From: Octopus bimaculoides | Taxonomy: Eukaryota | Reading direction: 5' to 3' | Length of the DNA stretch: 64,000 nt | NCBI RefSeq assembly: GCF_001194135.2 | Contig: NC_068991.1 | Location: forward strand, 7,358,008-7,422,007 | Part shown: piece by piece, positions 5,064-45,040 of the stretch | Layout of the letters: the number at the start of each line of letters is the position of its first letter | How positions within the stretch are numbered: the first letter of the stretch is position 1 | Notes under the pieces: generated by a model | Seen by the model: the letters and a program-made list of their open reading frames with translations, nothing else | Databases searched by the model: none | Told to the model about the DNA's origin: nothing | Position numbers and translations under genes: made by a program

Positions 5064-8000
5064 GGATATATACATGTCAACAGGTGTAAGCTATACAATA
5101 GATTTTAATGAAATAAAAAGTATGAATGCAAAAAATATTTAGAGGATTTCCATAATCTATTCCCATATGCTTCTATTAATATGGAGATATTATTAATTTC
5201 ACTCAATATCTAATAAAGTACTAGTCAAAATGGCAGTACACAAGTTTGAACATTGGAAAATCAAGACATCAGTTAAGCTAAAGAAACACAAATTTTACCA
5301 GTAAAACTAAAATGTATGAAAGTCTAACTCACTTTGTGAGGCATCTTTTTTGTTTCATTTTCGCATTCAGGCACAGTAGATGGAGGTGGTGCATCTATCC
5401 ATGACAAAGTTAATGGATTGTTCTCAAGTCCATGTTCACACAATAAGGCTTTTTGCTGCATAAGTCAGAAAAAAATTATATCTGTGTTTAAAGAAAACAG
5501 AAATATGAATACAATCTATAGTCTTACAGTTCAAATAACTCTCCTACATCTCTAAAACACACACACAACCTTTATTTAATATGAATGGAACTTGAGGGAG
5601 TAAATGTGAGCAAAAATCATGATCTACAAGTCTTTACAATCAATTGCTTTGTAGTTACACACCAGAAAAGAACCCCCACTTCTATTTATGTATGTGGTGG
5701 TATGTTTGTTTTTTTCTTACTTACAAAATCATACACAAGACAGACCTGCACAAGAAGGATGAAATAATGAAAAACAGTCACATCATCATCATCATTTCAA
5801 CCCTTTAGCATTCGCATTATTCTGTCAAAATGTAATGCTCATTTTATCAAATGATATTGTTGGGTTGGTGAGGGAGGCCACATCTGTCCATTTTGAACAT
5901 AAAACAGGTACAATATTTGGGTCGGATATGGCCTGTTTAAATACTAAAGAGTTTAATGTCCTACCTGCTATGCTTGCATGGGTTGGACAGAATTTACTGA
6001 GATGGATTTTCTATGGCTGAATGCCTTTCCTGTCACCAACCCTCACCTGTTCCCAAACAATGGGAACATATCTGTTTTAGCATGGTTGCTGTGACTGGAT
6101 GCGTCTCCTAACACCAGCCACTTCAAAGAGTGTACCTAGTACTTTTTATGTGGCACCAGCACTTGTGAAGTTACCAAGTCACATGCAAGACAAGACGCCC
6201 CAACAGAGGGAGCAGGGTGCAGTACTGAAGGAGGTGGTTGAATGATGAGAGGTTAAAACATGCGGTTCGGGGTGCGAGTCATAGGGAACGACCGTCCGAT
6301 CGCCGACTACCCTACATAGTAGTCTGGACCCCCTTGGNNNNNNNNNNNNNNNNNNNNNNNNNNNNNNNNNNNNNNNNNNNNNNNNNNNNNNNNNNNNNNN
6401 NNNNNNNNNNNNNNNNNNNNNNNNNNNNNNNNNNNNNTCGGCAGAAAGGAGAGGCAAGGACATGCCTTCGAGTCGGAGAGCTCGGCGTAGCGTCGGCGCG
6501 GGCGAGGATACCGATCGGTCGATGGCGACAGCACGAACAGTGTCTAGCAGTCTAAGAGATACATGGCTACTCCAGTCGGAAAAGAGGAGAAAATGGTGAA
6601 GACCTGTCAGAGTGACTAAGTCTGTAGAATACAAAATAAAATGTGTAATCCAAAATATAACAATAAACTTATCAAAAATATTTATTTTAACTTACAGCCA
6701 TAGTCAGGGACTTGAACTCCACAATTCCACTGCCATTTTTCTTACTTGATACAACCAGGGCAGTAACTTCCCCATACTTCAAAGAAACAGAATTACAATG
6801 GCATTTAAAGACAGTCATAAGCATCTGAAAATTTAATTCGAGAAACCTACAAAAATATGAATAATGTGATTGAAGCTACTCTTCAGAATCTAAATGTATA
6901 TTTGAAGATCTTACCTTAGAAAACAATTCCTCCAAAATATCTGCTGTATAGCCACCATTTGAAATATCTCCTTTCTTGGATTTCCATTTGATCTTTGAGA
7001 AAAAGAAATAATTTATGCTATATTTAATCAAGACAGTTTCAGATTCCTTCCAGTTTCTCAAATTATTTGAAGTACACTTCAGTCACCAAACAGACTTTCT
7101 CATTTTATTTGCAGAGGAATCAGAGTTGATAACATTGTGACATATTGGTGAATGAGTTGCTCTGACCTCCTCTATTTGATAGTTTCTTATTCTGGAGAAA
7201 CAGAATGCATATTGCTTCATTGGATTGATGCAAATGACCAAAAAAATAGAATTGTATCTTAAAGCTTTTCTCTCGGGAATTTGATAGGAAAAACACATCT
7301 GCAACCATGTCTAAAACAGGTCACCTTAACTGCACTTAGCTGTCAACCAAACAATGCAATTTGATGAGAACTTACAAGAAACAAGCAAATAGACTGAGTT
7401 GCTTTCCCTCGAATCAGAAAATATCAACCTAAATTTATGGCATGCTACAAACTACAGTTAATACCAGTCACATTCACGGTTAACTCAACAGTAAAAGTTA
7501 CAAATATTACATATATAATTACAAACATGTTTTTCTTCAAAAATAGTCAAATAGATTTAAAATTAAATTACCTTTAATCGGGGAAGAAGCTCTGATGAAG
7601 CTAAACACAAAAAGAAATATAATCTACATATAAATGATATAAGGAAATAGTTCATGACATAGCAACAATACAAGCGACTAAATGATAACTATATAAGCTC
7701 ACATGTAACTTATAGTTACATGTCCATACATAGCTAACTATACTTATAAATTGGTAACTCCGCTTCACTAATGTAATACTTGTAGACTATTTTTGAAAAA
7801 TACAATGGAGACATAGTCATTTAATACAACAAATAATACCATAAATACAGAAAGTGAAACATGATAGATAATTACTCATAAATATTCATGAATAAATTGT
7901 ACGCCTAATTAGTATTTATTTTTGTACATTTTTTTTCTTCTTCATAGTTTCACATCCCAGTTATTTTTCAGTTAAAATCAAGTATAAAATATTGTGGCTT

Positions 8001-13874: not shown

Positions 13875-14438
13875 ATGAAGACGATTTACGCTGACCAAAC
13901 TGTGAACGTGCCGGAGGGAGTGACAGTAAAAGTTAGTTCAAGGCGTGTAACAGTTACTGGTCCTCGCGGAACCCTGTATCGCAACTTCCGACACCTTTTC
14001 ATCACAATTACTCTGCCTAGGAAGAACCTCGTCAAAGTCGAAAAATACTTCGGTAAGAGGAAAGAATTGGCCGCTGTGCGCACTGTTTGCACTCATATTG
14101 AAAATATGATCAAAGGTGTTACTAAAGGGTTCCGTTACAAGATGAGGTCTGTCTATGCCCATTTCCCAATTAACGTTGTGGTATTGAATAATGGTAATGC
14201 CGTTGAAATAAGAAATTTCCTTGGAGAGAAATTTGCCCGGCATGTGGAAATGTTACCTGGTGTTCTCTTTTCCGTATCGACGGCGCAAAAGGATGAATTC
14301 GTCTTAGAAGGAAATGATATCGAGTTGGTTTCCAGATCAGCTGCCCTCATCCAACAGTCAACATCAGTGAAAGAAAAAGATATAAGAAAGTTCTTGGATG
14401 GCATTTATGTTTCCGAGAAAGGTACAATACAGGAATAA
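13875..14438 (+). CDS. RPL9: 60S ribosomal protein L9 (uL6), 187 aa, intronless CDS
   Basis: Uninterrupted ORF MKTI...[13 protein letters not shown]...[10 protein letters not shown]...[16 protein letters not shown]...[31 protein letters not shown] at 14434-14439 and 14498-14503. Confidence 0.99.
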
Positions 14439-17116
14439 ATAATGTTGGACAGTGTGAACACGAACTTTAACAGAACGTTTCAAACATTGTCTGATGAAAT
14501 AAAGTGGAGTGAACTATCTTTAATAATATGTGCGTTCTTTTCATTCCAATGTGCTATTTCTATATGGCATATTTCATAGATAAATACAGATGTTAATTTA
14601 TTTTTTGTCTTTTTATCCATATTGTTGACTTGAAGTTTTCGATGCAACTGAGAAGATCTCAGTTGCATCCTCTATTTAGTAATGATTGTGTATAGTTATT
14701 GTTTTGGTTAATTTCAGTTGTAAACAATCTATACGGCTTTTAACTATGTTATTGATATATTCTGGGTAATGAAACCAGATCTTAAAAACGCTGTAATGCA
14801 AGCAAAATGTCCCTCTCAGATATAGACTTTTTAGATGGTTTCAAGCTGGTATGTAGACAATATTAGAATGTGTGGTTCTAACTACAGAAGTTAAATAGGA
14901 TTCCACTTGGTAAAAATGGAAATCCTTTGTATATTCTGTTGCTTATCTTGGAAGTTTTGTTACATCGATGCCAATTTGGCTTACAAGTTATTGATCAACT
15001 CAAGATGATTGTGGAAGACACTTGTACAGTGGAACTGAATATATAGAGTTTGGCTTTCAGTGATGGATATAAATATTGGTGAGAAAATAGGGAGGGAAGG
15101 TGCTTAGTGCACAAATTCTCTTGATATTTGATCTGCATTAGGTTAGCTACTGCTTGAATTGCACTGAACTATGATATATCTTAACCTGATGTTCTCGTAC
15201 TTCTGTTATTAAACTAGAGTTCTGGATTCTACATGTGCATGATCTTAAAATTTGTATCATGCATGTAACTACCTGCATATTTTGCATTCTGTCACGGGTT
15301 GAATGGTTTCTCCAGGATCCAGCAAGTTACAGGTTTGTATAGAGATCAAGTGTCAGCTTCTACAGCCGGATGCCTTTCCCAACAGCAAACAAATGACACT
15401 AAGCTTGTTATTAAGGAGCATTGGGGAAACTATTTTCATCTTGTGGTCAGTGCAACACTTGTACTAGAGTAGTTGCTATGAACTGTTGACTAATAGGAAG
15501 TTTAATAAATGTTTCCTGCTTCTACAGAAATGAAGTTGGACCACCTTATAAGTAATAATGCACTATAAAGGTTTTCTTTGCATATGTGACACTAAATTGT
15601 CGTGTCCTTTATGCCATCAAGTACAATAATTTAAATTCTCCAATATCATTTGCCTTCATGTTTATACTCTACACTAATATGTTGATCCTATTGTTAATCA
15701 CTTTCACATTCCATTTTCCTACATATAAACATGGTTAATTTCAGACAGGCCTGTCCAAATCGAATTGAGGGCCGCTTGTGTACTTTCTGCACTAATGGTC
15801 AAATAATCAAATTACTGAATCAAGAATTTTTCGTTTACTCTTTTCAGTCATTTGACTGCGGCTGTGCTGCAGCACCACCTCTAGTTGAGCAAATCGACCC
15901 CAGGACTTGTTTGTTAATTATAAAATTGTTGGCTATTGTTTTATTACCACTTTGAGTATACCTTTATCTTTTGTTTCAGTCAATGGACAGTGACTATCCT
16001 GGGGCACTGCATTGAAGGGTTTTAAGGTCTGGTACTTAGTCTATCAATTGCTTTTGCCAAACTGTTAAGTTATTGGGACATTAATAATGAACTTCTGTGT
16101 ACCAAATTCACTCACAAGGCAGCCTGGAGCTTAAGTTGACACTTGCCCAAGGTGCCATATTGTGAGACTGAACCAAGAACCACATTGGAAAGTGAGCTTA
16201 ACCACACATTCATGCTTGCACGTAATAGTGCTGAACAGTTCTGGTTGAGTGGAGACCATTCTCCTTTATCTTTTTAGAATGCATTATCCACTATGCCTTT
16301 TTTTCTCTTTAAGGTGAGACCTGAGGTAATTTTTGGCTGCTATTTCCAGCCATTTGAGAAGTCATACCTCAGGTCTTTGTTACCAGTGGTTCATGTTCTA
16401 GAACTGGAAAGATGCAGATATTAGGAGAAACATGCAAATTCATGTGTCATTTGTCTTAAAGCTATTTATATCCATGGTTTAATGATTGCATGGGTCAGAC
16501 ATTTGTTGAGGCAAGTTCTCCTATGGCCAGGTGCTCATCTGTCACCAGCCTTCCTCTTTCCGAGCAAGGTAATAATTCCTCATGTTTTTGATGGAAGACC
16601 AGAAACAAACGTTTCACTTGTATGATGATGCTCATTTGTAACAATCACATAATCAAGACAAGATTATATGCAAACAGACGTATCTATGGCAAGTTTTTTC
16701 AGTTTCTATTTTATAAGACTTGTTGCAAGGTACCATGCAGTGGGACTGAACATTCTTCTTAGACACATAGCCATACATGTATCCTACAAGTTCTTAATTT
16801 TCTAACAAGGTGGAATTTTCTTTCCTTTAATGTAGTCTGATACTTTCTGGTGTTTTTTGCACATTATTTCTTTGGAATATTCACAATGGCATGAACCATA
16901 TATGTGTAGGTACCGTCTCATGGTAATCTCAAGTTTTTTGATTAGTGTTCAGATGAAGGAGCCATAAAATAGTACACATATGCTGGTTCCTTTTCAGATT
17001 CTCTGAGAGGTTAGATTTTCATATTTTACTGCAACTTCTGTCACCCAAGCTTAGCTTTTGCCTCTATAGCTACTTCTGTTGCTCCTGAGGTATTCTATTG
17101 TAATTATTTCAGTCAG

Positions 17117-19990: not shown

Positions 19991-22811
19991 TAAAACCCAT
20001 TATTTGTGCCTTTTTCTTACATACGTAAGGTGTGGTAAGAAGCTTGCCTTGCAATCACAGTACAGGGCTCAGTCCCACAGCACCTTGGGCAAGTGTTTCT
20101 CTACTATAGCTTCTGGCCTAACAAAGCCTTCTGAGTGGATTTGCTACATGGAAACAAACAAAAAGCATATATATATATATAAATATACACACACATATAT
20201 ATTGCCAGTGCCCCTGGACTGGCTCTTGTGCGGGTGACACATAAAAGACACCATTTCGAGCATGGCCGTTTTCGTGCGGGTGACATGTAAAAGCACCCAC
20301 TACACTCTCTGAGTGGTTGGCGTTAGGAAGGGCATCCAGCTGCAGAAACGCTGCCAAATTAGATTGGNNNNNNNNNNCACTCTCTGAGTGGTTGGCGTTA
20401 GGAAGGGCATCCAGCTGCAGAAACGCTGCCAAATTAGATTGGAGCCTGGTGTTGCCATCCGGTTTCACCAGTCCTCAGTCAAATCGTCCAACCCATGCTA
20501 GCATGGAAAGCGGACGTTAAATGATGATGATGATATATATGTATGTATGTGTTCGTCCACCTACCATCGTTTGACAACTGATGTTGGTGTGAATAACTTA
20601 GCAGTTCGCCAAAAGAGTGATACAATAACTACTAGGCTTACAAATAATAAGTCCTGGAGTTGATTTCGACTAAAACTCTTATAAGGTGGTGCTCCAGCAT
20701 GACCAGTCAAAATGACTGAAACAAGTAAAAGAATATATATATATAAACATGATTCTATCAAATCCACTCACAAAGCTTTTGTTAACTTGAGGCCCAAGCT
20801 GCCATGCAGTAGGACTGAACCTGAAACCATGCAGTTAGGAAGCAAACTTCTTAACCACACCCCCACATCTGAAGGCAGCTTGAAGAATATAATACTAGAA
20901 AGTTGCAAGTAGACAGCTTCGTGTCAGAGAAATAGAAATAAAATTCAACATATTCAAAAATGATATTAACAAATTTTTATCTTTTCCATTTGTTATTGTA
21001 ATAAAGGAGAAAGATGAAACATAAAATAAATGAAAACAATATTGTTATTTTGATAATTCATTGAAAGATGTTGAATGATTTCATTACTCCTGAGATATAT
21101 ATAAAGTTGTATGAAATGAAATTTTATCAGTACAAAAAAAAAAAAAAAAAAAAAAAAGGAAAGCTTTTCTTGAAATATCTATGATTATTTAAATTAAAAA
21201 AAAAAACATATTGGCAGGAAGTAACATTATATAAACAAAAAAATTCAGTCAAGATTAACAATGACATTAGTACAGACAGAAACAACTGATTCCAGTATAG
21301 GCACAAAGCCTGAAAACTGGTTTAAAAAAAAAAAATGTGGCGTTGATACCATGAATCCCAGTATATAACTGGTACTTTATTTTATTAACCCCAAAAGAAT
21401 GAAAAGCACAGTTGATCTTGGTGGTATTTGAACTCGGAACATAAAGAGCTAAAAGAAATACCTCAAGGCATTGTTTGATGTTGTAGAAACACTACCAATC
21501 CATAATAATGACGAAGCTTTTGCAAGGGGAAACAACTCCATATTGTTTGTCGTTGAACCTGTTTACAACTGGTTATTTCCCTGCTATAAGAAATGATTCA
21601 TTGTAAACGAGAAATAATCAAAGGAACCAGTGAAGAAATATTTGTCAATTAATATTCCTAATTTGATATAGAATATAGATATATGAATATATATATATGA
21701 ATAAGTAAACCTAAACAAAATACTTATTTAAATTCACTCAGACGAACCAGTAATATCATATTTCACATGAGCAGAAATACAGGGTGTCTAAAAAACAAAA
21801 TTGAATTTTCATCATCAACCCTTGGATATTACTGTGTTGAACCTTAAGCCTCATAAGACACATTACCTGGTTTCCATAGCATATAAGTGACTGAGATCGC
21901 AACATTCCCCCTGGATGGGATGCCAGTCCATTGCAGTGTTACTCATTTACAGCTGAGTGGACTGGAGCAATGTGATATGAAGTGTTTTGATCAAAAACAC
22001 AACACACTGCCCAATCTAGCTATCGAAACCATGATCTTGCGGTCCTCAGTGCAACACCCTAACCACTAGGCTATACGCTTTCATCTTTTTTTTTCTTTTT
22101 ATCAGCATATCCTATAATGATTTGATTCCATTAAAAATTTTTTCAAGTGCCAAATTATACAATCCAGTGATGAAATGTAGAGAGGAAAACTAAGTTGTTT
22201 CATCAAAAGTGCTTGAATCATTTGTAATTTTGCAAACCTAAATCCTCATATTTTTGCTCTGAGTTAAGGATTTGTCTTTTAATTACAGTAAGAACAGTAT
22301 GCAGAAAGAGAAGTGATTTTGTTCGTTAGAAAATAAAACCTTTGCAGGAGCATTTTTTTTTTTTTTTTAATGTTTGCAAAGAATTATAAACAAACAGTAA
22401 TTTTAGAATTTTAATAATAGAAAAGATAGTGATGACAAGATGATATGAAAACAGTCTTTGATAAAGCTATTCAACTAAGAAAACAATACATGGTATAGCA
22501 GCAATTGTTACTATTGCTTGACAAATTCCACAGCATAGAATGTCAACTCAGAAATATGGTTCTCCCTATGTGAAAAATTCAAAGGAATTTATCAAACTTT
22601 TGGAGTAAACTTTTACCAAGAGAATAACTATGAGTGTCTCTAAACTGAGAGAGATGGGGGTGGGGCAAAGAAAAAAAATAAAATAAAATCAACAAAATGA
22701 TAAATAATTAGATTGAGACCTCTAAGATAGGAGCCAATATGAAATGTCATTATTATTATTATTTACTCTTTTTTTTCATTTTTTTTTTGTTAGTAATTAC
22801 TTTGATAGATA

Positions 22812-25808
22812 TTAATCTTCAGTCCATTCAAACGGCTCTGGAGGTTCTGGTTCTGATTCTTCTTCGACTTTGGGACCACCTGCAGCAATAGGTTCTACAA
22901 GGTCTTCAAGATCATCTGGTTTGCGATTGTGTAACATAATGATTCCTCCGCTCGTTACATCTTTCACTGACGTATATCTCGAGGAATCTGGCATGGTGAT
23001 CATTCGGAGCTGTGCACGCATAACTCGAGCTGGGTTGTCTAATAACTCAAAGTTTGCTTCTGGCTTCTTTTCTTTTTCTTCCTCTTTCTTTTCTTCTTTT
23101 CCTTCTTTCCCTTCCTCTTTCTTCTCTTTAACCACTTCTTTCTTCTCTTCCTTTTTCTCTGTTTTAGCAGTCTTCTTTTCTGGCTCATCTGAAGTCTCTT
23201 CATCTACATCCATTTTCTCTTCTTTCTCCTTCTTTTCAGCTTCTTTTTTCTTTTGTTTAGCTGTAATACTGAGGACAGCAGTTTTAACTTTTTCTTTAGT
23301 TTTGTCTTTTTTTTCTTCTAAATGAGGTGGGTATGCAAATGTGGAAGGTTTTGCATTAGAACGAAACTGTACTTTTGGCATTAACAAATTGCTGTTGAGT
23401 CCAATTATACAAGTAGGCTTAAATGCCAAGGATAAAAAGTGAGTAAGAGGGTACCAAAACCAATACTGACAAAACACCAACATTCCTACCACAGCTTCCA
23501 TATTGGTATGACCTGTGCGAGACTGAAGAGAAATAGTAACATTTCGACCACCGGCATCTAGTATTCCTTGGGCTAAGATAGCGCCAAATTTTGCCATAAC
23601 ATCATCATGTTTGTCAGTAATTACTTTAGTATATAATTGACGGAAGTGTGTGACTTTCGGGCAAGTGATTTCATTTTGCTGAATAAGAACTAGAGCTGAA
23701 GCAATGAGGGCCCCTTGCCGTACGTAGTTAACAGGGTCATTAGTCATGGGTTCCAACAGGGTCAGAGCTTCTTTTAGACCAGTTCCAGCACAAGCAATGC
23801 CCAAAGCCATTGCAGCACCAAATCTAACATGAGGATTATAACTTTCCGATAGTAAAGAGACAACTTGTGGACATTTTTCAGGAGTCCGGAACAGAAGAAA
23901 TCCAAGGGAAGTGACAGCGACACGTCTCACATCATCATTGACGTCGCTGACAGCAATATGGAGCAATTTTCTGATAGCTTGGTTGTTGCCAGAACCACAG
24001 TAAGCCATAGCAAGGGTATACATGCCAGACCAACGAAGAATAGGATCCTTATCTTGAGACAAAGTTTTGACTAGTTCGTCAGCTTCTTCCATCCGACCAT
24101 ACATGGTAAGGGCGATACCAACGGACAAGCCACGAAGAATTTTCTCGTGCTGAGTATCCTGTGCATATACAAGCATATCGTGGATAGCAGCATCATTCTT
24201 AGTTCCAAGCATTACTAACCCCATAGCAAGTCCTGCTGCTTCACCAGTCACTGCATCATCTTGGTACAAATTTATCCGAAGTTGTTCAAAGATATCTTGC
24301 TGAGCAGTACCCATCGCTGCCAGACCCAAGCCAAGACAACCTCCATGTCTCACCATTTCGTTTGTGGCCTCTTTAAGTTGACTGAGTAAATAATTTGTAA
24401 TCTCACCTCCATGATTAGCATGAATTAATCCAAGAGCATAAAGACCCCCACCTTCTGAATAGGTAGATCCTGGACTCGAGTCTTTGGGTAGATATGTAGA
24501 CATGAAATTCAAGACATCCTTCTCATGGCCCTTATGAATAACACCAAGACTTGCAGTTGCAGTGAATTTAGCCCAGTTAGTGGCACGAGCCAACCATTCT
24601 AAATTGTCGCGAAGAAACTGATCGCATGTAGTGCCACAATGCATAAAAGAATTGGCAATAACAGTGGCTGAGTGACACAAGGAATTACGAACAGCATCTT
24701 TGGTATTTTTCAGAATCAATGAATCAGTTTTATTGTTCCTAATAAGGAAATCCAAGTGCAATTTTATAGTGTTTTCTCCTCCAAGAATGGTATAAAGTTT
24801 GACAATTTTCTCCTGAAGATCTTTTTGGTCTTCAGTTAGCGACGGACTTGCAGGTGCTGGTGCAGCTGCTTCTGCGGATTTCTCCTCATCGACTTCCATT
24901 TTCTCTTCCTTGTTTTCTACACTGGGAGCAACTTGTTTTTCTTCTTCCGTTTTCATGGACGGTAATGGTGCTGGGGCCACCTGCCGAAGCCAGTTTTGCA
25001 CCTCCTGTAGAAATTGTTGGGTCGCACTCTCATACAAATCAAATGCAATTTGAAGAGCTTTAAGTTGCGATTCTTCATTTCCCTTAATTAATTTCTCTAG
25101 GATATTTGCAACAGATTGGTGGTCATCCAAGAAAATATAACACTGACATACACTGATATAATCTGGGGACTTAAGGCGCATGTAGAGCTCAGTAAGAACA
25201 CGTAGTACATCATTTCTAAAATGTCTACTCATTATGTGAGATAAACAAACTTTTAAACTATATGCCAACATTGCCGAAGGGTCATCCGATTCCAAAATTG
25301 CTTTTTCAAACATATCAATCCTTCTTGTTTCCAAAGCAATACCCACAACTTGTTTATATTGTTTATCATCAAAACACCTCTGAAACATTCGATTAACTAT
25401 CGCTTCAAGTCGAGTATCCATCATTTTAGCATCATCTTGTGTTTCAGCGTTAATAACCTGCGTTTTGGTATATTGGTCCATACATTTTGCTTTGATTGTA
25501 GACACATATTCAGAAGTATCAGTAACATCAAACAAATTGAGGGCTCCCAAAGCATACTTAAGTGAATCCTCATAAGCCCCAAGATGATAATAAACTTTAG
25601 AAGCAACTAAAGCAGCCAGATCACGGCAACGGAAATCATGACTTTCATACAATACCTCAATTTTTACAACCGCTTCAGCTATTTCAGCCCAAAATACATC
25701 AACGATCTTGTTTAGTTTTTCCAAAGCAAATACCTTCAGTTGTTCGTCCGGTTCGTCCAGCAGAGATATAACTCCTGAAGCCGAAGTCATATGAGTTTTC
25801 ATCTTCAT
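22812..25808 (-). CDS. PSMD1: 26S proteasome non-ATPase regulatory subunit 1 (Rpn2), intronless, ~998 aa
   Basis: Single uninterrupted ORF: [37 protein letters not shown]..., PC repeats ([48 protein letters not shown]), C-terminal [10 protein letters not shown]. Start taken at 25808 (AAAACCATGA context); 25790 (MTSASG) is an alternative. Confidence 0.98.
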
Positions 25809-28127: not shown

Positions 28128-28566
28128 TAATTGATACCTATATTTTGCAAGCCATCTGAAGTCCTAGTTAACCCTTAATATGTCAGAAATCCTTCTATCT
28201 ATTTATATATTCATTGCTCCCTACATAACAAGTAAGGGTACTCCCTTGATGGCACTGAGATTCAGCCTATTATAAGTTAACCATGACCATCTATTAGAGT
28301 TATACTCAACTCAAAAGCTTCTCTATTACTGTAACTTTATTTAACTGTTTCAATATCATACAATATAACATTTACACACTAAATATGGTTTGTCATTTGT
28401 AAACCTTTTAAAAGTTTTGTTAATAGCCATGGTTGTGTGATTGAGAACCCATGTGGTCTTGGATTCCATGCCACTGTACAGCACCTTAGACAAATCTCAT
28501 CTACTAATTCATGAACGTTTTTCTATCTCATTTCCATATGTAATTTCTTTTTTTTTCTTTTTAGAG

Positions 28567-29325
28567 ATGAAAATGGCTGAACAAATGAGGTACCCATATA
28601 CTATGAGTGCCAAGATGATGCGCTTTCCATGGAAGTACCATTGGGCTAATGCTAGATTTTTGAGATATTTGACATATGCTATCATCATAGCATCTCCTCT
28701 TTACATCAAGATCCATAAATTTGGTAAGAATTTTTCTGAATTTTTTTTTTCTTTTCTTTTCGTTGCAAAACTACTCTTCAACTATTTTATTGGTTCACTT
28801 GGTGACCCTGTTGATGCTGGTACCACATAAAAAAGCACCCTGTGCTCTTTGTAATGTTGTTAGTGTTAGGAAGGGCATCCCAGCCATTGAAACCATTCCA
28901 AAACAGACAATGGAGCTGGTGCAGCTCCTGTCAAACTCTGCAACCTATGCCAGCATGGAGAGTGGACATTTGATGATGATGATGATGATCTGAAGTAGCC
29001 AATGATGGCATAGTTTGTGATCTTTTTCTCTTTTCTGTTCTTCAGATTTATGGCTGCCTTTTATTTACATTTTTCACTTTAATCTATATTGTATATCTCT
29101 TCTGCTATTCCAGTTATTTTTGGACATAATCACATCGTGAGGTACATAAATATTTCTGTACATACATATAGGTAGCCAGTATAACTGTGTGGTTAAGAAG
29201 CTTGCTTCTCATCCACATGGTTTCAGATTCAATCCCAGTGTGCAGCACCATGAGCAGGTGTCTTCTAGCCCTAGGCCAACCAAAAACTTGAGTGGATTTG
29301 GTAGATTGAAACTGAAAGAAACCCA

Positions 29326-35800: not shown

Positions 35801-38420
35801 ACCCACTAACAACACATGATCAGTCTGTGAAATTACGAAGGAAAATAAGATATTACATTTGAACCAGTAATCAATAATAAAGGAAGGTGTTTATAAGCCA
35901 TCAAAGAAACACACAAAAACCGTTAGATTCACTTCAACATTTAAATTTAATTTGTCAACATATTTTGGTCACTTTGAGACTGCGACCTGTTCATTGACAA
36001 AATTCCATGGTTGCGGTCTCAAAGCGAAGAAAATATTTTGACAAATTAAATTTAAATGTTGAAGTGAATCTAACAGTTTTTGTGTGTTTCTTAAATGGCT
36101 TATAAATACCTTCCATGCTGCATGTCTGTGGGCATGACATAGTAAAAACACATACTAAATACAGGCCTCCAAGTTCAAGTTTAGATACGTGGAAAATAAT
36201 GCAAGGAGCAGAAGAATAATAGAATATTTTTAAAAGTTACTACTTCTTGTCTGTGGTCATGACATAGTAAATGAACCGGAAGAATCTGAAGAGCTTCAAA
36301 TATAATGCCTTGTAAGATTTTGCTGTACCAAGGTAGCACGCTGGCGGAATCAGTAGCACACCAAGCAAAATGCTTAACAGCATTTTGTCCACCTTTATGT
36401 TCTGAGTTCAAATTCAGCTGAGGGTGACTTTGTCTTTCATCCTTTCTGGGTCAATAAAATAAGTACCAGTTGCATACTGGTATCGATCTAATTGACAGCC
36501 CGCCCCCATCTTCCCCCAAAATTTTGAGTCTCGTGCCTAGAGTAGAAAAGAATAATATAAGTACCAGTTGAGCACTGGGGGAATCGATGTAATCAACTTA
36601 TGCCCTCCCCCCAAAATTGCTGGGCTTGTGCCAAAATTTCATTATACCAAGGCAGGAAGCTGGCAGAATGGTTAGCACAGTGAACAACACACTTAGCAGC
36701 GTTTCATCCAGCTTTACATTCTGAGTTCAAATTCTGCCAAAGTTGACTTTACCTTTCATACTTCATAAAATAGGTACCAGTTAAATATTGGGGTCGATGT
36801 AATCAACTTAACCCCTCCCCTGAAAATGATGACCCTGTGCTAAAATTTGAAACCAACATTTCATTATACTACTGTTTTTTTTTTTAAATATTTTAAGCTC
36901 AAATCCTTTCAGGGTTGAAAAAATAAAGTCTCTGTCAAACATTGCAGTTGACAGACTCAATTATATTCATCATCATCATGAACGTTTAACGTCCGCCTTC
37001 CATGCTGGCATGGGTTGGACGATTTGACTGAGGACTGGTGAACTAGATGGCTGCACCAGGCTCCAGTCTGATCTGGCAAAGTTTCTACAGCTGGATGCCC
37101 TTCCTAACACCAACCACTCTGAGAATGTAGTGGGTGCTTTACTCTCTTCCAAAAATTGTGTCTATGTCAGAAACCAATATATTTAGAATTTTTATAGAAC
37201 TCAAAAAACAAGTTTAAATGTTTTTCTAAAACAACCCAATGCTTATAGAGGGAACCAAATGTACAAACTAAAACACTGCAGATCAGTCTAATATTTAAAA
37301 GAATATTACCCTTTCCATAACAATCTGAGCTAGTTGTATAGGGTTAGCAATGTTCTGCACACAAGCAACAGCACCACTGTTTAGAGTAGAACCTTCCATA
37401 ATCATTGCGTCCATTTCAACTTCACCAATGCTGTTAAGCACAGATCCGGTGCCTAATGAATGAAAGTTAGTAAAACAACATGTAAATATGAGAAAACAGC
37501 TCAATCTTCTACAACACACATAAGTATATAACACTAACTGTAGTCGGTTATTTTTAGAGAGTTCAATAATGCAGACTATGAAATATTGTAATCAACAGTA
37601 AATGTTAAATGTTCTCTGACTAATGACTTTATGGAAAGTATTTTATTATTGTTGTTGTTGTTGGCACTCCGTCGCTTACAACGACGACGAGGGTTCCAGT
37701 TGATCCGATCAACAGAACAGCCTGCTCGTGAAATTAACGTGCAAGTGGCTGAGCACTCCACAGACACGTGTACCCTTAACGTAGTTCTCGGGATATTCAG
37801 CGTGACACAGTGTGACAAGGCTGACCCTTCGAATTACAGGCACAACAGAAACAGGAAGTAAGAGTGAGAGAAAGTTGTGGTGGAAGAGTACAGCAGGGTT
37901 CACCACCATCCCCTGCCGGAGCCTCGTGGAGCATTAGGTGTTTTCGCTCAATAAACACTTACAACGCCTGGTCTGGGAATCGAAACCACGATCCTATGAT
38001 CGCGAGTCTGCTGCCCTAACCACTGGGCCATTGTGCCTCCACGGAGTTTATAATGTCTATGAGAAATACAGCAATAAAATACATATCTATCTGTAAATGG
38101 TGCATTTTGTTTCAACAAATTCTCAACTAGTTTTAACTTATCAGCAAAAAAAATTTCTGATAGGAACAAATTTAAACAGAGACCAATGTGTTTATGGAGA
38201 AATGGGTTTTAAAAAGTTACATACCAGCATCAAAGACAGGATCATTCTCAAGACTTGTCACAGCAGTCACAACAGCATCTATTGCACTTCCATTTTGCTT
38301 TAATTTCATAAATCCCAAATTAGCAGCATGTTTTACTCCTTCTACACTTCTTTCAGACATATCATCGGGTATAGCCCAAGCTCCACCATGGACGGCTATA
38401 ATGGGCTTTATATCATTCAT
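32843..38420 (-). CDS. ASRGL1: Isoaspartyl peptidase/L-asparaginase (Ntn hydrolase), 6 coding exons, 316 aa
   Basis: Exons (minus): 38225-38420, 37310-37452, 35655-35824, 33956-34077, 33229-33339, 32843-33051; 951 nt, phases consistent. Motifs [40 protein letters not shown]|[13 protein letters not shown]...[24 protein letters not shown]. Confidence 0.95.
33590..33880 (+). mobile_element. Highly degenerate RTE LINE 3' fragment in an ASRGL1 intron
   Basis: Weak nucleotide resemblance to the RTE 3' region at 63200-63595. Confidence 0.35.
35882..36114. mobile_element. Fold-back element/MITE with ~106-bp inverted arms and a 21-nt spacer
   Basis: 35882-35987 (GGAAGGTGTTTATAAGCC...CTTTGAGACTGCGACC) is nearly the reverse complement of 36009-36114 (GGTTGCGGTCTCAAAG...GGCTTATAAATACCTTCC). 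No clear TSD. Confidence 0.85.
36335..36860 (+). mobile_element. Cluster of 2-3 SINE-A copies/fragments in tandem
   Basis: Repeated SINE-A head, core and tail segments starting at about 36335, 36555 and 36652. Confidence 0.8.
37650..38041 (-). mobile_element. tRNA-derived SINE family D, near full length, (AAC)n tail
   Basis: Minus-strand head ggaggcacaatggcccagtggttagggcagcagac...ggtttcgattccc has A/B boxes. The body matches 34883-35115, 18585-18900 and 56310-56570. Confidence 0.85.
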
Positions 38421-38813: not shown

Positions 38814-39790
38814 CCCTCAATCTACAGGGTCTAAGTGATTATTTGTTGGAAGTTTCGTTTATAGCATCCATTTTTCAGGAAGTTATGAGGCAACAAAGTC
38901 GGTGGGGTAGTTATGTCAAAGTTATGAGCGGGGAGGCAAGTCAGATTGTGTGAATTTACCGAAACTCCTCTTCCTACCCCCTTGGGGAAATNNNNNNNNN
39001 NNNNNNNNNNNNNNNNNNNNNNNNNNNNNNNNNNNNNNNNNNNNNNNNNNNNNNNNNNNNNNNNNNNNNNNNNNNNNNNNNNNNNNNNNNNNNNNNNNNN
39101 NNNNNNNNNNNNNNNNNNNNNNNNNNNNNNNNNNNNNNNNNNNNNNNNNNNNNNNNNNNNNNNNNNNNNNNNNNNNNNNNNNNNNNNNNNNNNNNNNNNN
39201 NNNNNNNNNNNNNNNNNNNNNNNNNNNNNNNNNNNNNNNNNNNNNNNNNNNNNNNNNNNNNNNNNNNNNNNNNNNNNNNNNNNNNNNNNNNNNNNNNNNN
39301 NNNNNNNNNNNNNNNNNNNNNNNNNNNNNNNNNNNNNNNNNNNNNNNNNNNNNNNNNNNNNNNNNNNNNNNNNNNNNNNNNNNNNNNNNNNNNNNNNNNN
39401 NNNNNNNNNNNNNNNNNNNNNNNNNNNNNNNNNNNNNNNNNNNNNNNNNNNNNNNNNNNNNNNNNNNNNNNNNNNNNNNNNNNNNNNNNNNNNNNNNNNN
39501 NNNNNTTCTGAAAAAAAATTTTCAAAAATCTCAATTTCAAAATTTCGATTCCCCCTTCCCCGGTTTTTATATAGATCCACAGGGTAAACCTAACCCTAAC
39601 CCTAACCCTAACCCTAACCCTGAACCTGACCTGAGATTTGGCTGTTATTTCTAGCAAGTAAATAGCCTGCATGGGTGGGGGGTTGAAATTTTTCAAACAA
39701 TTTTTTTTCAGAATCGGAATCTCCATAGCCTAAAACGTGGGATTCCGTAAAAAAATAAATAAATAAGGGGGGGGTTCAGATTACATATAG
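38814..39790. mobile_element. Unclassified insertion containing a (CCCTAA)n tract, spanning a gap
   Basis: Truncates a SINE-A at ~38810; compositionally distinct and CpG-containing; CCTAA(CCCTAA)4 at 39589-39617. Interior hidden by Ns (38992-39505). Confidence 0.45.
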
Positions 39791-39969
39791 TCCGTCTCCG
39801 CCCTTCTCCACTTGGTGCCAACATGACCTTTCCGTCCTTTAAATAAAGAAATAACAAATATATTTACTTACCTGAGTACTTAATGATATTGAATAAAAAT
39901 CGATTTCTAAATATAATTATTTGTAAAAACAGACAGTTTTTAAAAAAAATATTTTAGATATATTTAAAC

Positions 39970-40209
39970 TTAGACGGGCATTTGTGCTGCTTTTGATTGA
40001 GTCGAAGGGTCTTCAAAACAATTCGTACCAGTTTCTTCTTCGATTTTTTTCTGAATTTTAGCAGCCTTTTTATCATAAAAGCTTTTCACTCTCTTCAAAT
40101 AGCTTACACGTAAAGTTTTTAATCTGTATCCGACTACAACACCTATGACAAATGCAATTGATGCCGCTATAACAATTTCCCTGCCCGTGGCATGCATTTT
40201 GACGAGCAT
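39970..40209 (-). CDS. MTLN: Mitoregulin-like microprotein (79 aa from ATG 40209; 75 aa from ATG 40197), single exon
   Basis: IVIAASIAFVIGVVVGYRLKTLRVSYLKRVKSFYDKKAAKIQKKIE aligns without gaps to human MTLN as remembered (LQLSVLVAFASGVLLGWQANRLRRRYLDWRKRRLQDKLAATQKKLD), 15/46 identical by manual count. Same TM helix followed by a basic amphipathic segment. Both ATGs are in AAAATG context. Confidence 0.75.
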   Translation of the reverse strand: MLVKMHATGREIVIAASIAFVIGVVVGYRLKTLRVSYLKRVKSFYDKKAAKIQKKIEEETGTNCFEDPSTQSKAAQMPV

Positions 40210-40337
40210 TTTCAAACTCAATCATGTTTAACTTAGCTAGAAAACTATGGAATACAATATGCGTCATCTAAGCCTAATTTGTGTTAACTTGTTTTAGGTA
40301 AACTAGTGAATGTGCGAGCGAGTGCACATATAGTCTT

Positions 40338-40585
40338 TTACTCTTTAACTTGTTTCAGTCATTTGACTGCGGTCATGCTGGAGCACCGCCTTTAGTCGAG
40401 CAAATCGACCCCAGGACTTATTCTTTGTAAGCCTAGTACTTATTCTATCGATCGCTTTTGCCGAACCGCTAAGTCACGGGGACATAAACACACCAGCATC
40501 GGTTGTCAAGTGATGTTGGGGGTGGGAACAAACACAGACACACATACATATATACAACGGGCTTCTTTCAGTTTCCGTCTATCAA
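40338..40585 (-). mobile_element. SINE family C, partial
   Basis: ttgtttcagtcatttgactgcgg.catgctggagcaccgcctttagtcgagcaaatcgaccccaggacttattc... recurs at 15840, 20540, 44808, 50410, 52485 and 58745. Confidence 0.85.
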
Positions 40586-44807: not shown

Positions 44808-45040
44808 AAACTCTCTTTTACTCTTTTACTTGTTTCAGTCAATTGACTGCGGCCATGCTGGAGCACCGCCTTTAGTCGAGCAAATCGACCCCAGGACTTA
44901 TTCTTTGTAAGCCTAGTACTTATTCTAGCGGTCTCTTTTTGCCGAACCGCTAAGTTACGGGGACGCAAACACACCAGCATCGGTTGTCAAGCGATTTTAG
45001 GGGGACCAACACAAACACACAAACATGCACACACACTATT
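44808..45040 (-). mobile_element. SINE family C, 3' part
   Basis: Nearly identical to 40338-40585. Confidence 0.85.

Follow-up and report, generated by a model that had tools for sequence, protein, structure and literature searches.

The 64,000-nucleotide stretch of Octopus bimaculoides DNA analyzed here (contig NC_068991.1, positions 7,358,008–7,422,007; hereafter the window, whose own numbering is used throughout) carries on its minus strand a short open reading frame (smORF) whose predicted product resembles mitoregulin (MTLN), a tiny mitochondrial membrane protein described in the literature as missing from invertebrates. We consider it probable, at roughly 80%, that this is a genuine and currently unannotated smORF encoding the octopus ortholog of MTLN. 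Judged from its sequence, the smORF is coding, conserved, and homologous to MTLN through a continuous family; its product and MTLN have a common architecture, and the exon structure is probably common to both genes.

Coordinates and predicted product of the smORF

The original prediction placed an open reading frame (ORF) of 75–79 codons at 39970–40209 without stating the strand; the ORF is real, lies on the minus strand, and in those coordinates is read in its 79-codon version. Three in-frame starts were found, namely ATG 40197 (75 residues), ATG 40209 (79 residues), and TTG 40221 (83 residues), and an in-frame TGA at 40222–40224 closes the frame just upstream of the TTG. The ATG at 40209 is replaced by ATA in the orthologous octopod contig L002, and the 79-codon start is thus not conserved. 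Therefore, ATG 40197 was taken as the start. This codon (40197–40195) has an A at position −3 (gtcaaaATGc), and the orthologs start with MH(A/V)TG or MNANQ at its position. The smORF region is single-copy within the window.

The 75-residue product is MHATGREIVIAASIAFVIGVVVGYRLKTLRVSYLKRVKSFYDKKAAKIQKKIEEETGTNCFEDPSTQSKAAQMPV. It has the layout of the MTLN microprotein, with a single N-terminal transmembrane (TM) helix followed by a strongly basic segment. Both elements had been predicted, and both are present: the helix, which includes AFVIGVVVGY, spans residues 8–24 with a Kyte–Doolittle maximum of 2.61 at the same residues as in camel MTLN, and the net charge over the 30 residues after it (+8) is equal in the octopus product and camel MTLN. 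The helix holds the family-invariant residues F16, G19, and G23 (GxxxG motif), and Y24 is an aromatic residue aligned to W25 of vertebrate MTLN. In the basic segment, R30, L34, K38, and Q49-K50-K51 are common to all the aligned vertebrates. A C-terminal extension of about 25 residues had also been proposed; the extension exists and measures about 20 residues, but beyond residue 57 all three orthologs have tails of differing length and sequence, so that it is not a conserved part of the protein. AlphaFold2, run with a 50-sequence alignment, predicted a single helix over residues 5–58, with a predicted local distance difference test (pLDDT) score above 90 over residues 1–50 and low confidence in the tail.

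Match to mitoregulin

The smORF product matched the Pfam family PF22002 (MTLN), the seed of which appears to be dominated by vertebrates, with 26.3 bits in its 83-residue form and 26.5 bits in its 75-residue form (E 6-7e-6), aligned to positions 7–54 of the 56 in the hidden Markov model (HMM). In a pairwise BLASTP comparison, the octopus product and human MTLN aligned without gaps, as had been claimed, with 16 identities in 48 positions (E 4e-8); the human sequence used is 98% identical to the database mitoregulin P0001. The characteristic MTLN residues F17, G20xxxG24, aromatic 25, R31, L35, K39, and Q50-K51-K52 (human numbering) are all present in the octopus product in this gapless register, the aromatic residue being Y and not W.

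The strength of the match was compared with chance using a vertebrate-only profile built from 87 vertebrate MTLN cores. When all 1,094 ORFs in the window that run for 30 residues or more from stop to stop were searched with this profile, the smORF was the sole match (22.8 bits, E 4.5e-6), and the runner-up scored 5.2 bits. The real sequence scored 23.0 bits, as against a maximum of 8.7 bits in 20,000 whole-sequence shuffles and 16.6 bits in 20,000 shuffles that preserved its segments (N-terminus, TM, basic, and tail blocks). The octopus genome is roughly 2.7 Gb in size, and extrapolation from the window search (per-ORF p ~4e-9) gave about 0.2 chance matches at this score per octopus genome. 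Therefore, independent evidence was needed.

Relatives outside the vertebrates

A word-indexed protein search with human MTLN returned 88 proteins, of which all the named ones were from vertebrates. The same type of search with the octopus ORF returned no match; because it also missed P0148, a 65%-identical ortholog that shares KKAAK and QKKIEEE with the query, this negative is uninformative. An exhaustive hmmsearch of 1.84 billion representatives was performed with a profile (A1) made from the octopus ORF and 11 diverse vertebrate MTLNs, and 99 proteins were retrieved at E<=1e-3. About 50 of them were non-vertebrate, nearly all 47–110 residues long, with the motif SFxxGxxxG[YW]KLKx[WL]RxxYLKxKRDxLxxKLxxTQKxID. 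Most of these short relatives came from ENA, Logan, or Joint Genome Institute (JGI) assemblies, and two carried names: the 'uncharacterized protein LOC109485345' of the amphioxus Branchiostoma belcheri (XP_019644463.1) and the 'cellular protein AbCp-37' of the scorpion Androctonus bicolor (AIX87760.1).

The short relatives scored 13–45 bits (mostly 20–45) against the vertebrate-only profile, and in an alignment of 50 members (A2), all 50 individually matched PF22002 at E<=0.01. With a profile of 46 non-vertebrate, non-cephalopod relatives, the window ORF scored 60.1 bits (E 8e-18 among the window ORFs), segment-preserving shuffles reached at most 20.5 bits, and the 87 vertebrate MTLNs scored 46–75 bits. 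Residues F16, G19, G23, L34, and QKK were invariant across all the aligned sequences. Searching the JGI metagenomes for related loci, with the cephalopod alignment as the query, gave matches to 600 patterns, none of which was confirmed.

It had been pointed out that ORFs this small often escape annotation, and two cases bear this out. The octopus ORF has no annotation, and that of the amphioxus gene is mis-spliced in its current model: XP_019644463.1 (134 residues) leaves the smORF by splicing at an internal GT (L009 10001–10310, from Branchiostoma belcheri KV412134.1). Read straight through, exon 1 of the amphioxus gene encodes an MTLN-like protein of 55 or 65 residues ending in KLVDTQKRIDIS.

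Orthologs and selection on the reading frame

Two orthologs from public assemblies were used for comparison. P0148, a protein of 66 residues (MHVTGKQIVVTASIVFVIGIVVGYKLKGIRVRYLKKVKTFYNNKAAKVQKKIEEESGTDYYDDVSI), is encoded on the octopod genomic Logan contigs L002 and L003 (SRR11869391 and SRR11869384); L002 is 84.7% identical to the window in DNA over 40294–39811, and the similarity ends on both sides. P0152, a protein of 78 residues, is encoded on L004 (ENA ERZ21867824), which has no nucleotide similarity to the window by blastn and matches it in the ORF only by tblastx.

According to the original prediction, the lack of a significant HMM match and of codon-level conservation in related species would refute it; neither lack was observed. 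To the profile matches described above, the comparison with L004 adds the latter. Over codons 1–55, the two proteins are identical at 36 of 55 positions (65%), the proportions of nonsynonymous (pN) and synonymous (pS) differences are 0.20 and 0.98, and the identities at codon positions 1, 2, and 3 are 0.78, 0.80, and 0.33 (Fisher p 1.4e-8); stops abound in both of the other L004 frames. Saturated synonymous sites together with this codon-position pattern point to long-term purifying selection on the smORF frame and, on this codon evidence, the frame is under purifying selection across species.

For the closer octopod pair (window and L002), the ratio of nonsynonymous to synonymous substitution rates (dN/dS) was replaced by the deep comparison with L004 and by a simulation of how conservative the substitutions are, in which 13 transitions and 7 transversions were placed randomly in 20,000 runs. 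A stop codon arose in 47% of the runs, and among the stop-free simulations, only 0.18% were as conservative as the real substitutions (mean BLOSUM62 score of +1.13 for the real and −0.15 for the simulated changes). Thus, constraint persists in the octopods, with fast change through conservative exchanges. As a separate observation, the microprotein core differs at 16 of 55 residues between the octopods (window 39970–40197 and L002 299–499) and at 19 of 55 residues between the window and L004, and all the octopod changes are conservative.

Exon structure and flanking sequences

A perfect donor (cag/gtaagt), predicted from consensus and conservation, lies 98 nucleotides past the stop of the octopus smORF (Table 1). 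Consensus donors were also found past the stop in L002 (132 nucleotides), L004 (102), the amphioxus locus L009 (112), and the camel locus L010 (111). For the family member P0164, the comparison of an RNA-derived contig (L008, with adapters at both ends) with its genomic counterpart (L005) placed the whole smORF in exon 1, which ends 61 nucleotides past the stop. The recurrent post-stop donor fits the published position of the human MTLN ORF, which is exon 1 of a short transcript (Stein et al. 2018, PMC6091870).

Upstream of the smORF, the conserved 97-nucleotide block may be either a 5′ untranslated region with a core promoter or the region of a splice acceptor. ATGs occur within it at 40209 (in frame, not conserved) and at 40225 and 40267 (both out of frame). 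The overlapping +1-frame ORF that begins at 40225 is unlikely to be a gene and was rejected as one: it is open in both octopods but has several stops in L004 and no Pfam match. No known RNA gene was returned by Rfam and tRNA scans of the smORF neighborhood. The repeat resembling a short interspersed nuclear element (SINE) that lies beyond the block is absent at the smORF site in L002, where a CA microsatellite is found instead. This SINE-like family has at least eight copies in the window with 70–90% identity, including those at 40334–40549, 44814–45026, 20533–20735, 52490–52733, 15831–15911, 50414–50587, and 58741–58905.

Table 1. Features at and around the MTLN-like smORF in window coordinates; residue numbers refer to the 75-residue product.
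Feature	Position	Strand	Remarks
ASRGL1-like (Asparaginase_2) first coding exon	38225..38420	-	ATG 38420, 1.55 kb downstream of the smORF stop, same strand
Predicted 5′ splice site, tactcag/gtaagtaa	39864..39878	-	Exon end 39872, intron GT 39871-39870; identical in L002
3′ untranslated sequence, stop to predicted exon end	39872..39969	-	98 nucleotides; conserved with octopod contig L002
MTLN-like smORF	39970..40197	-	75 codons plus TAA stop at 39970-39972
C-terminal tail, residues 56-75, TGTNCFEDPSTQSKAAQMPV	39973..40032	-	Acidic, polar, low model confidence
Basic helical segment, residues 25-55, RLKTLRVSYLKRVKSFYDKKAAKIQKKIEEE	40033..40125	-	Net charge of first 30 residues +8
Overlapping +1-frame ORF (MIEFENARQ...)	40073..40225	-	50 codons; begins at out-of-frame ATG 40225; probably not a gene
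Transmembrane helix, residues 8-24, IVIAASIAFVIGVVVGY	40126..40176	-	Kyte–Doolittle 17-residue maximum 2.61
Conserved upstream block	40198..40294	-	97 nucleotides; 92.8% identical to L002; alignment lost upstream of 40294
SINE-like repeat	40334..40549	.	Just upstream of the conserved block

The ASRGL1-like neighbor and other features of the window

Downstream of the smORF lies an ASRGL1-like (isoaspartyl peptidase/asparaginase) gene, whose six coding exons (38420–32848, minus strand) were reconstructed by hand to a protein of 308 residues. An assembly gap (38992–39505) separates it from the smORF, and beside this gap, at ~39590–39640, is an interstitial telomere-like repeat of about five TTAGGG units in the minus-strand reading. 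L004 contains a decayed ASRGL1-like exon 1 (6470–6700; HGG changed to DGR, with frameshifts). This exon shares the strand of the L004 smORF and lies ~5.7 kb downstream of it, and a strong acceptor (ttttcag) precedes the ATG of the exon by 10 nucleotides. The presence of an ASRGL1-like exon downstream of the smORF in both the window and L004 is a case of microsynteny that supports the orthology of the two loci; in view of the relic and its acceptor, the smORF exon might also be an ASRGL1 leader. A search for orthologous DNA by means of ASRGL1 returned metagenomic asparaginases and one octopod genomic contig, L001 (SRR11869391), the ASRGL1 exon 1 of which is 84% identical to that of the window and which ends short of the smORF.

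For the family member P0164, the comparison of L008 (1–1127) with L005 (9971–13483) showed that the smORF (37–198) is followed 36 nucleotides later by a 263-codon ORF that has no Pfam match and is uninterrupted over six exons. Past exon 1, the transcript runs through five more exons; its sequence is GC-rich, and one of the introns is 56 nucleotides long. L008 looks like a bicistronic mRNA.

Elsewhere in the window, a PSMD1/Rpn2-like protein of 998 residues (22815–25808, minus strand) and an RPL9/uL6 protein of 187 residues (13875–14435, plus strand) are each encoded by a single uninterrupted ORF. Both have exact Octopus matches in NCBI/EukProt, and proteins of O. sinensis and O. vulgaris fall into the same clusters; the consecutive accession numbers of the two O. 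vulgaris proteins suggest that the genes are adjacent there too. These intronless copies have a retrogene-like look. The window ORF at 28441–28830 (plus strand), which begins with MAEQMRYPYTMSAKMMRFPWKYHW and contains a hydrophobic stretch, resembles a small membrane protein and has no Pfam match.

Evaluation of alternative explanations

Several points weigh against the identification of the smORF as the octopus MTLN gene. The transcription and translation of the smORF are presumed, and the octopus splice sites are all predicted from consensus and conservation only. The exact peptide, searched in its three start variants, was absent from a collection of 15 billion proteins that includes RNA-derived assemblies. 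The PF22002 scores fell 0.5–0.7 bit under the curated gathering cut-off of 27 bits, and the profile of 46 relatives is partly circular, since the profile that retrieved these relatives held the window ORF as one of its 12 sequences; the circularity is limited because the relatives are individually significant in the library of 1.8 billion and bridge to vertebrates unaided. The out-of-frame ATG at 40225, 28 nucleotides upstream of the start, would compete for initiation if it were part of the mRNA, which depends on where transcription starts. In addition, dN/dS for the octopod pair is ~1.6 (17 nonsynonymous and 3 synonymous changes), which on its own indicates no recent purifying selection.

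The last value would also fit decay or relaxed constraint in octopods, in which case the smORF would be what is left of an MTLN gene that has lost its function in this species, its frame being intact by chance. The octopods differ at nearly as many core residues (16/55) as the window and the far more distant L004 do (19/55), a SINE lies just upstream of the conserved block, and the peptide is missing from the protein collections, all of which are compatible with decay. However, the ASRGL1 exon 1, taken as a control over the octopod-pair distance, also gave a noisy dN/dS (omega 0.63), and 55–65 codons are therefore too few for this ratio at such a divergence. Both octopods have an intact frame, although nearly half of the equally mutated simulations gain a stop. 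Random changes would be far less conservative than the observed substitutions (p ~0.002), none of the family-invariant residues has changed, and conservation extends to the donor site, the flanks, and the context of the start. We thus hold decay to be improbable. Chance occurrence of an ORF in AT-rich DNA without coding function, for which the expectation of ~0.2 vertebrate-profile matches per genome could be cited, does not account for the 60-bit match to the invertebrate profile, the orthologs with coding-type substitutions, or the conserved exon structure, and it is effectively refuted by the codon pattern of L004 and the match to the profile of 46 relatives.

A conserved membrane microprotein could also have come to resemble MTLN by convergence on a hydrophobic plus basic helix and have another localization and function. 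Such TM-plus-basic proteins do cross-match unrelated families (18 of the 50 family members match the bacterial LapA_dom and two match COX14), the octopus product is only 24–33% identical to vertebrate MTLN, and W25, which is important for MTLN oligomerization (PMC11732159), is Y in octopus. Against this, architecture-preserving shuffles never came near the real score, graded intermediates connect the cephalopod sequences with those of other invertebrates, amphioxus, and vertebrates, F16, G19, G23, L34, and QKK are shared without exception, and the predicted exon–intron architecture is common to the octopus, L004, amphioxus, and camel loci, which leaves convergence with little probability.

A role of the smORF exon as the 5′ leader of the ASRGL1-like mRNA, either in a bicistronic message or as a translational regulator of ASRGL1, is partly compatible with an MTLN ortholog; it differs in that there would be no independent gene and the regulation of ASRGL1 would be a main role. 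The smORF and the ASRGL1-like gene are co-oriented at a distance of 1.55 kb, a strong conserved donor follows the smORF by 98 nucleotides, AG dinucleotides occur after T-rich stretches just upstream of the ASRGL1 ATG, L004 has, likewise downstream and co-oriented, the exon relic with its ttttcag acceptor, and the RNA-derived L008 carries an MTLN-like smORF before the 263-codon ORF. Against the leader role, the purifying selection at the peptide level shows that the protein itself is of consequence, whereas an upstream ORF with a regulatory role alone would not need such selection. In the published description of vertebrate MTLN (PMC6091870), the transcript is short, its first exon holds the smORF, and no second cistron is mentioned, and in L004, the ASRGL1-like exon has decayed while the smORF is intact, making the smORF independent of ASRGL1. 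Thus, we consider the leader role a credible but unlikely alternative, and an octopus ortholog of MTLN is retained as the preferred explanation.

Proposed function and evolutionary implications

As the octopus ortholog of MTLN, the smORF product would consist of a single-pass anchor (residues 8–24, F-x2-G-x3-G-aromatic), a strongly basic helix of ~30 residues, and an acidic, disordered tail peculiar to its lineage. The homology with vertebrate MTLN suggests that the N-terminal helix may insert into a mitochondrial membrane, leaving the basic helix exposed for contact with the acidic lipid cardiolipin and with partner proteins. Self-association would occur via the glycine/aromatic face of the helix, and fatty-acid oxidation and respiratory efficiency would thereby be supported. 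In mouse and human MTLN, the substitution W25V breaks the oligomers (PMC11732159). The entire coding sequence is expected to lie in one exon, with an intron ~100 nucleotides past the stop, as published for human MTLN.

Full-text literature searches retrieved no paper on invertebrate or 'mitoregulin-like' homologs. By profile and alignment, the octopus ORF is a new unannotated member of the MTLN family, and the family extends into protostomes. Its occurrence in cephalopods, a chelicerate, and amphioxus implies an origin at least in the bilaterian ancestor and not a vertebrate invention. The few residues kept over that distance (F, GxxxG, the aromatic residue, R..YL, and QKK) are natural targets for work on the disputed mechanism of MTLN and on its inner- versus outer-membrane localization, and non-vertebrate systems are opened for its study. 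Such genes are overlooked or mis-spliced by annotation, as the octopus ORF and the amphioxus model illustrate.

More speculatively, MTLN may be pan-bilaterian, with an ancestral form consisting of a 5′-proximal smORF located in exon 1 of a transcript with several exons. Among cephalopods, this exon would serve as the leader of the ASRGL1 mRNA in a conserved bicistronic MTLN–ASRGL1 message, and in octopods, the microprotein would be evolving unusually fast by conservative substitutions. We regard this extended scenario as doubtful.

Comparison with known systems

The bacterial LapA domain (PF06305) has the same layout of a TM and a basic helix, and it gave the weak cross-matches in 18 of the 50 family members mentioned above. 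The window ORF itself had no LapA match at E<=10, and the resemblance appears to be compositional or architectural only.

Drosophila Sloth1 and Sloth2 (PMC9681215) are small mitochondrial membrane peptides that are 5′-proximal on transcripts with another ORF. They have no sequence relationship to the octopus product, but they would offer a possible parallel if the octopus smORF shares a transcript with ASRGL1, and maybe also for L008.

The likeness to vertebrate mitoregulin (MTLN/MOXI/MPM/SMIM37, the LINC00116 product; PF22002) is found in the TM helix at residues 8–24, the charge of +8, the gapless alignment of the invariant residues, and one long predicted helix. It extends to a single-exon coding sequence with a donor ~100 nucleotides past the stop, the octopus donor being a predicted one. 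The proteins differ in that the identity is 24–33% and W25 is replaced by Y. The vertebrate WQANR and FLDWRKKRLQDKL blocks correspond to YRLKTLR and YLKRVKSFYDKKAAK in the octopus product, which has 75 residues with a 20-residue acidic tail, whereas vertebrate MTLN has 56 residues. The genomic neighbors of vertebrate MTLN presumably also differ from those of the octopus locus.

The MTLN-like microproteins of other invertebrates (the amphioxus and scorpion proteins and about 45 ORFs from ENA, Logan, and JGI assemblies) have 47–90 residues and belong to the same family as the octopus product by profile (60 bits), with SFxxGxxxG[YW]-KLK-x-[WL]R-x-x-YLK in common. The cephalopod proteins differ from these relatives in having K-[STD]-FY-[DN]-[KN]-KAAK-[IV]-QKK instead of KRDxLxxKLxxTQK and in their longer tail.

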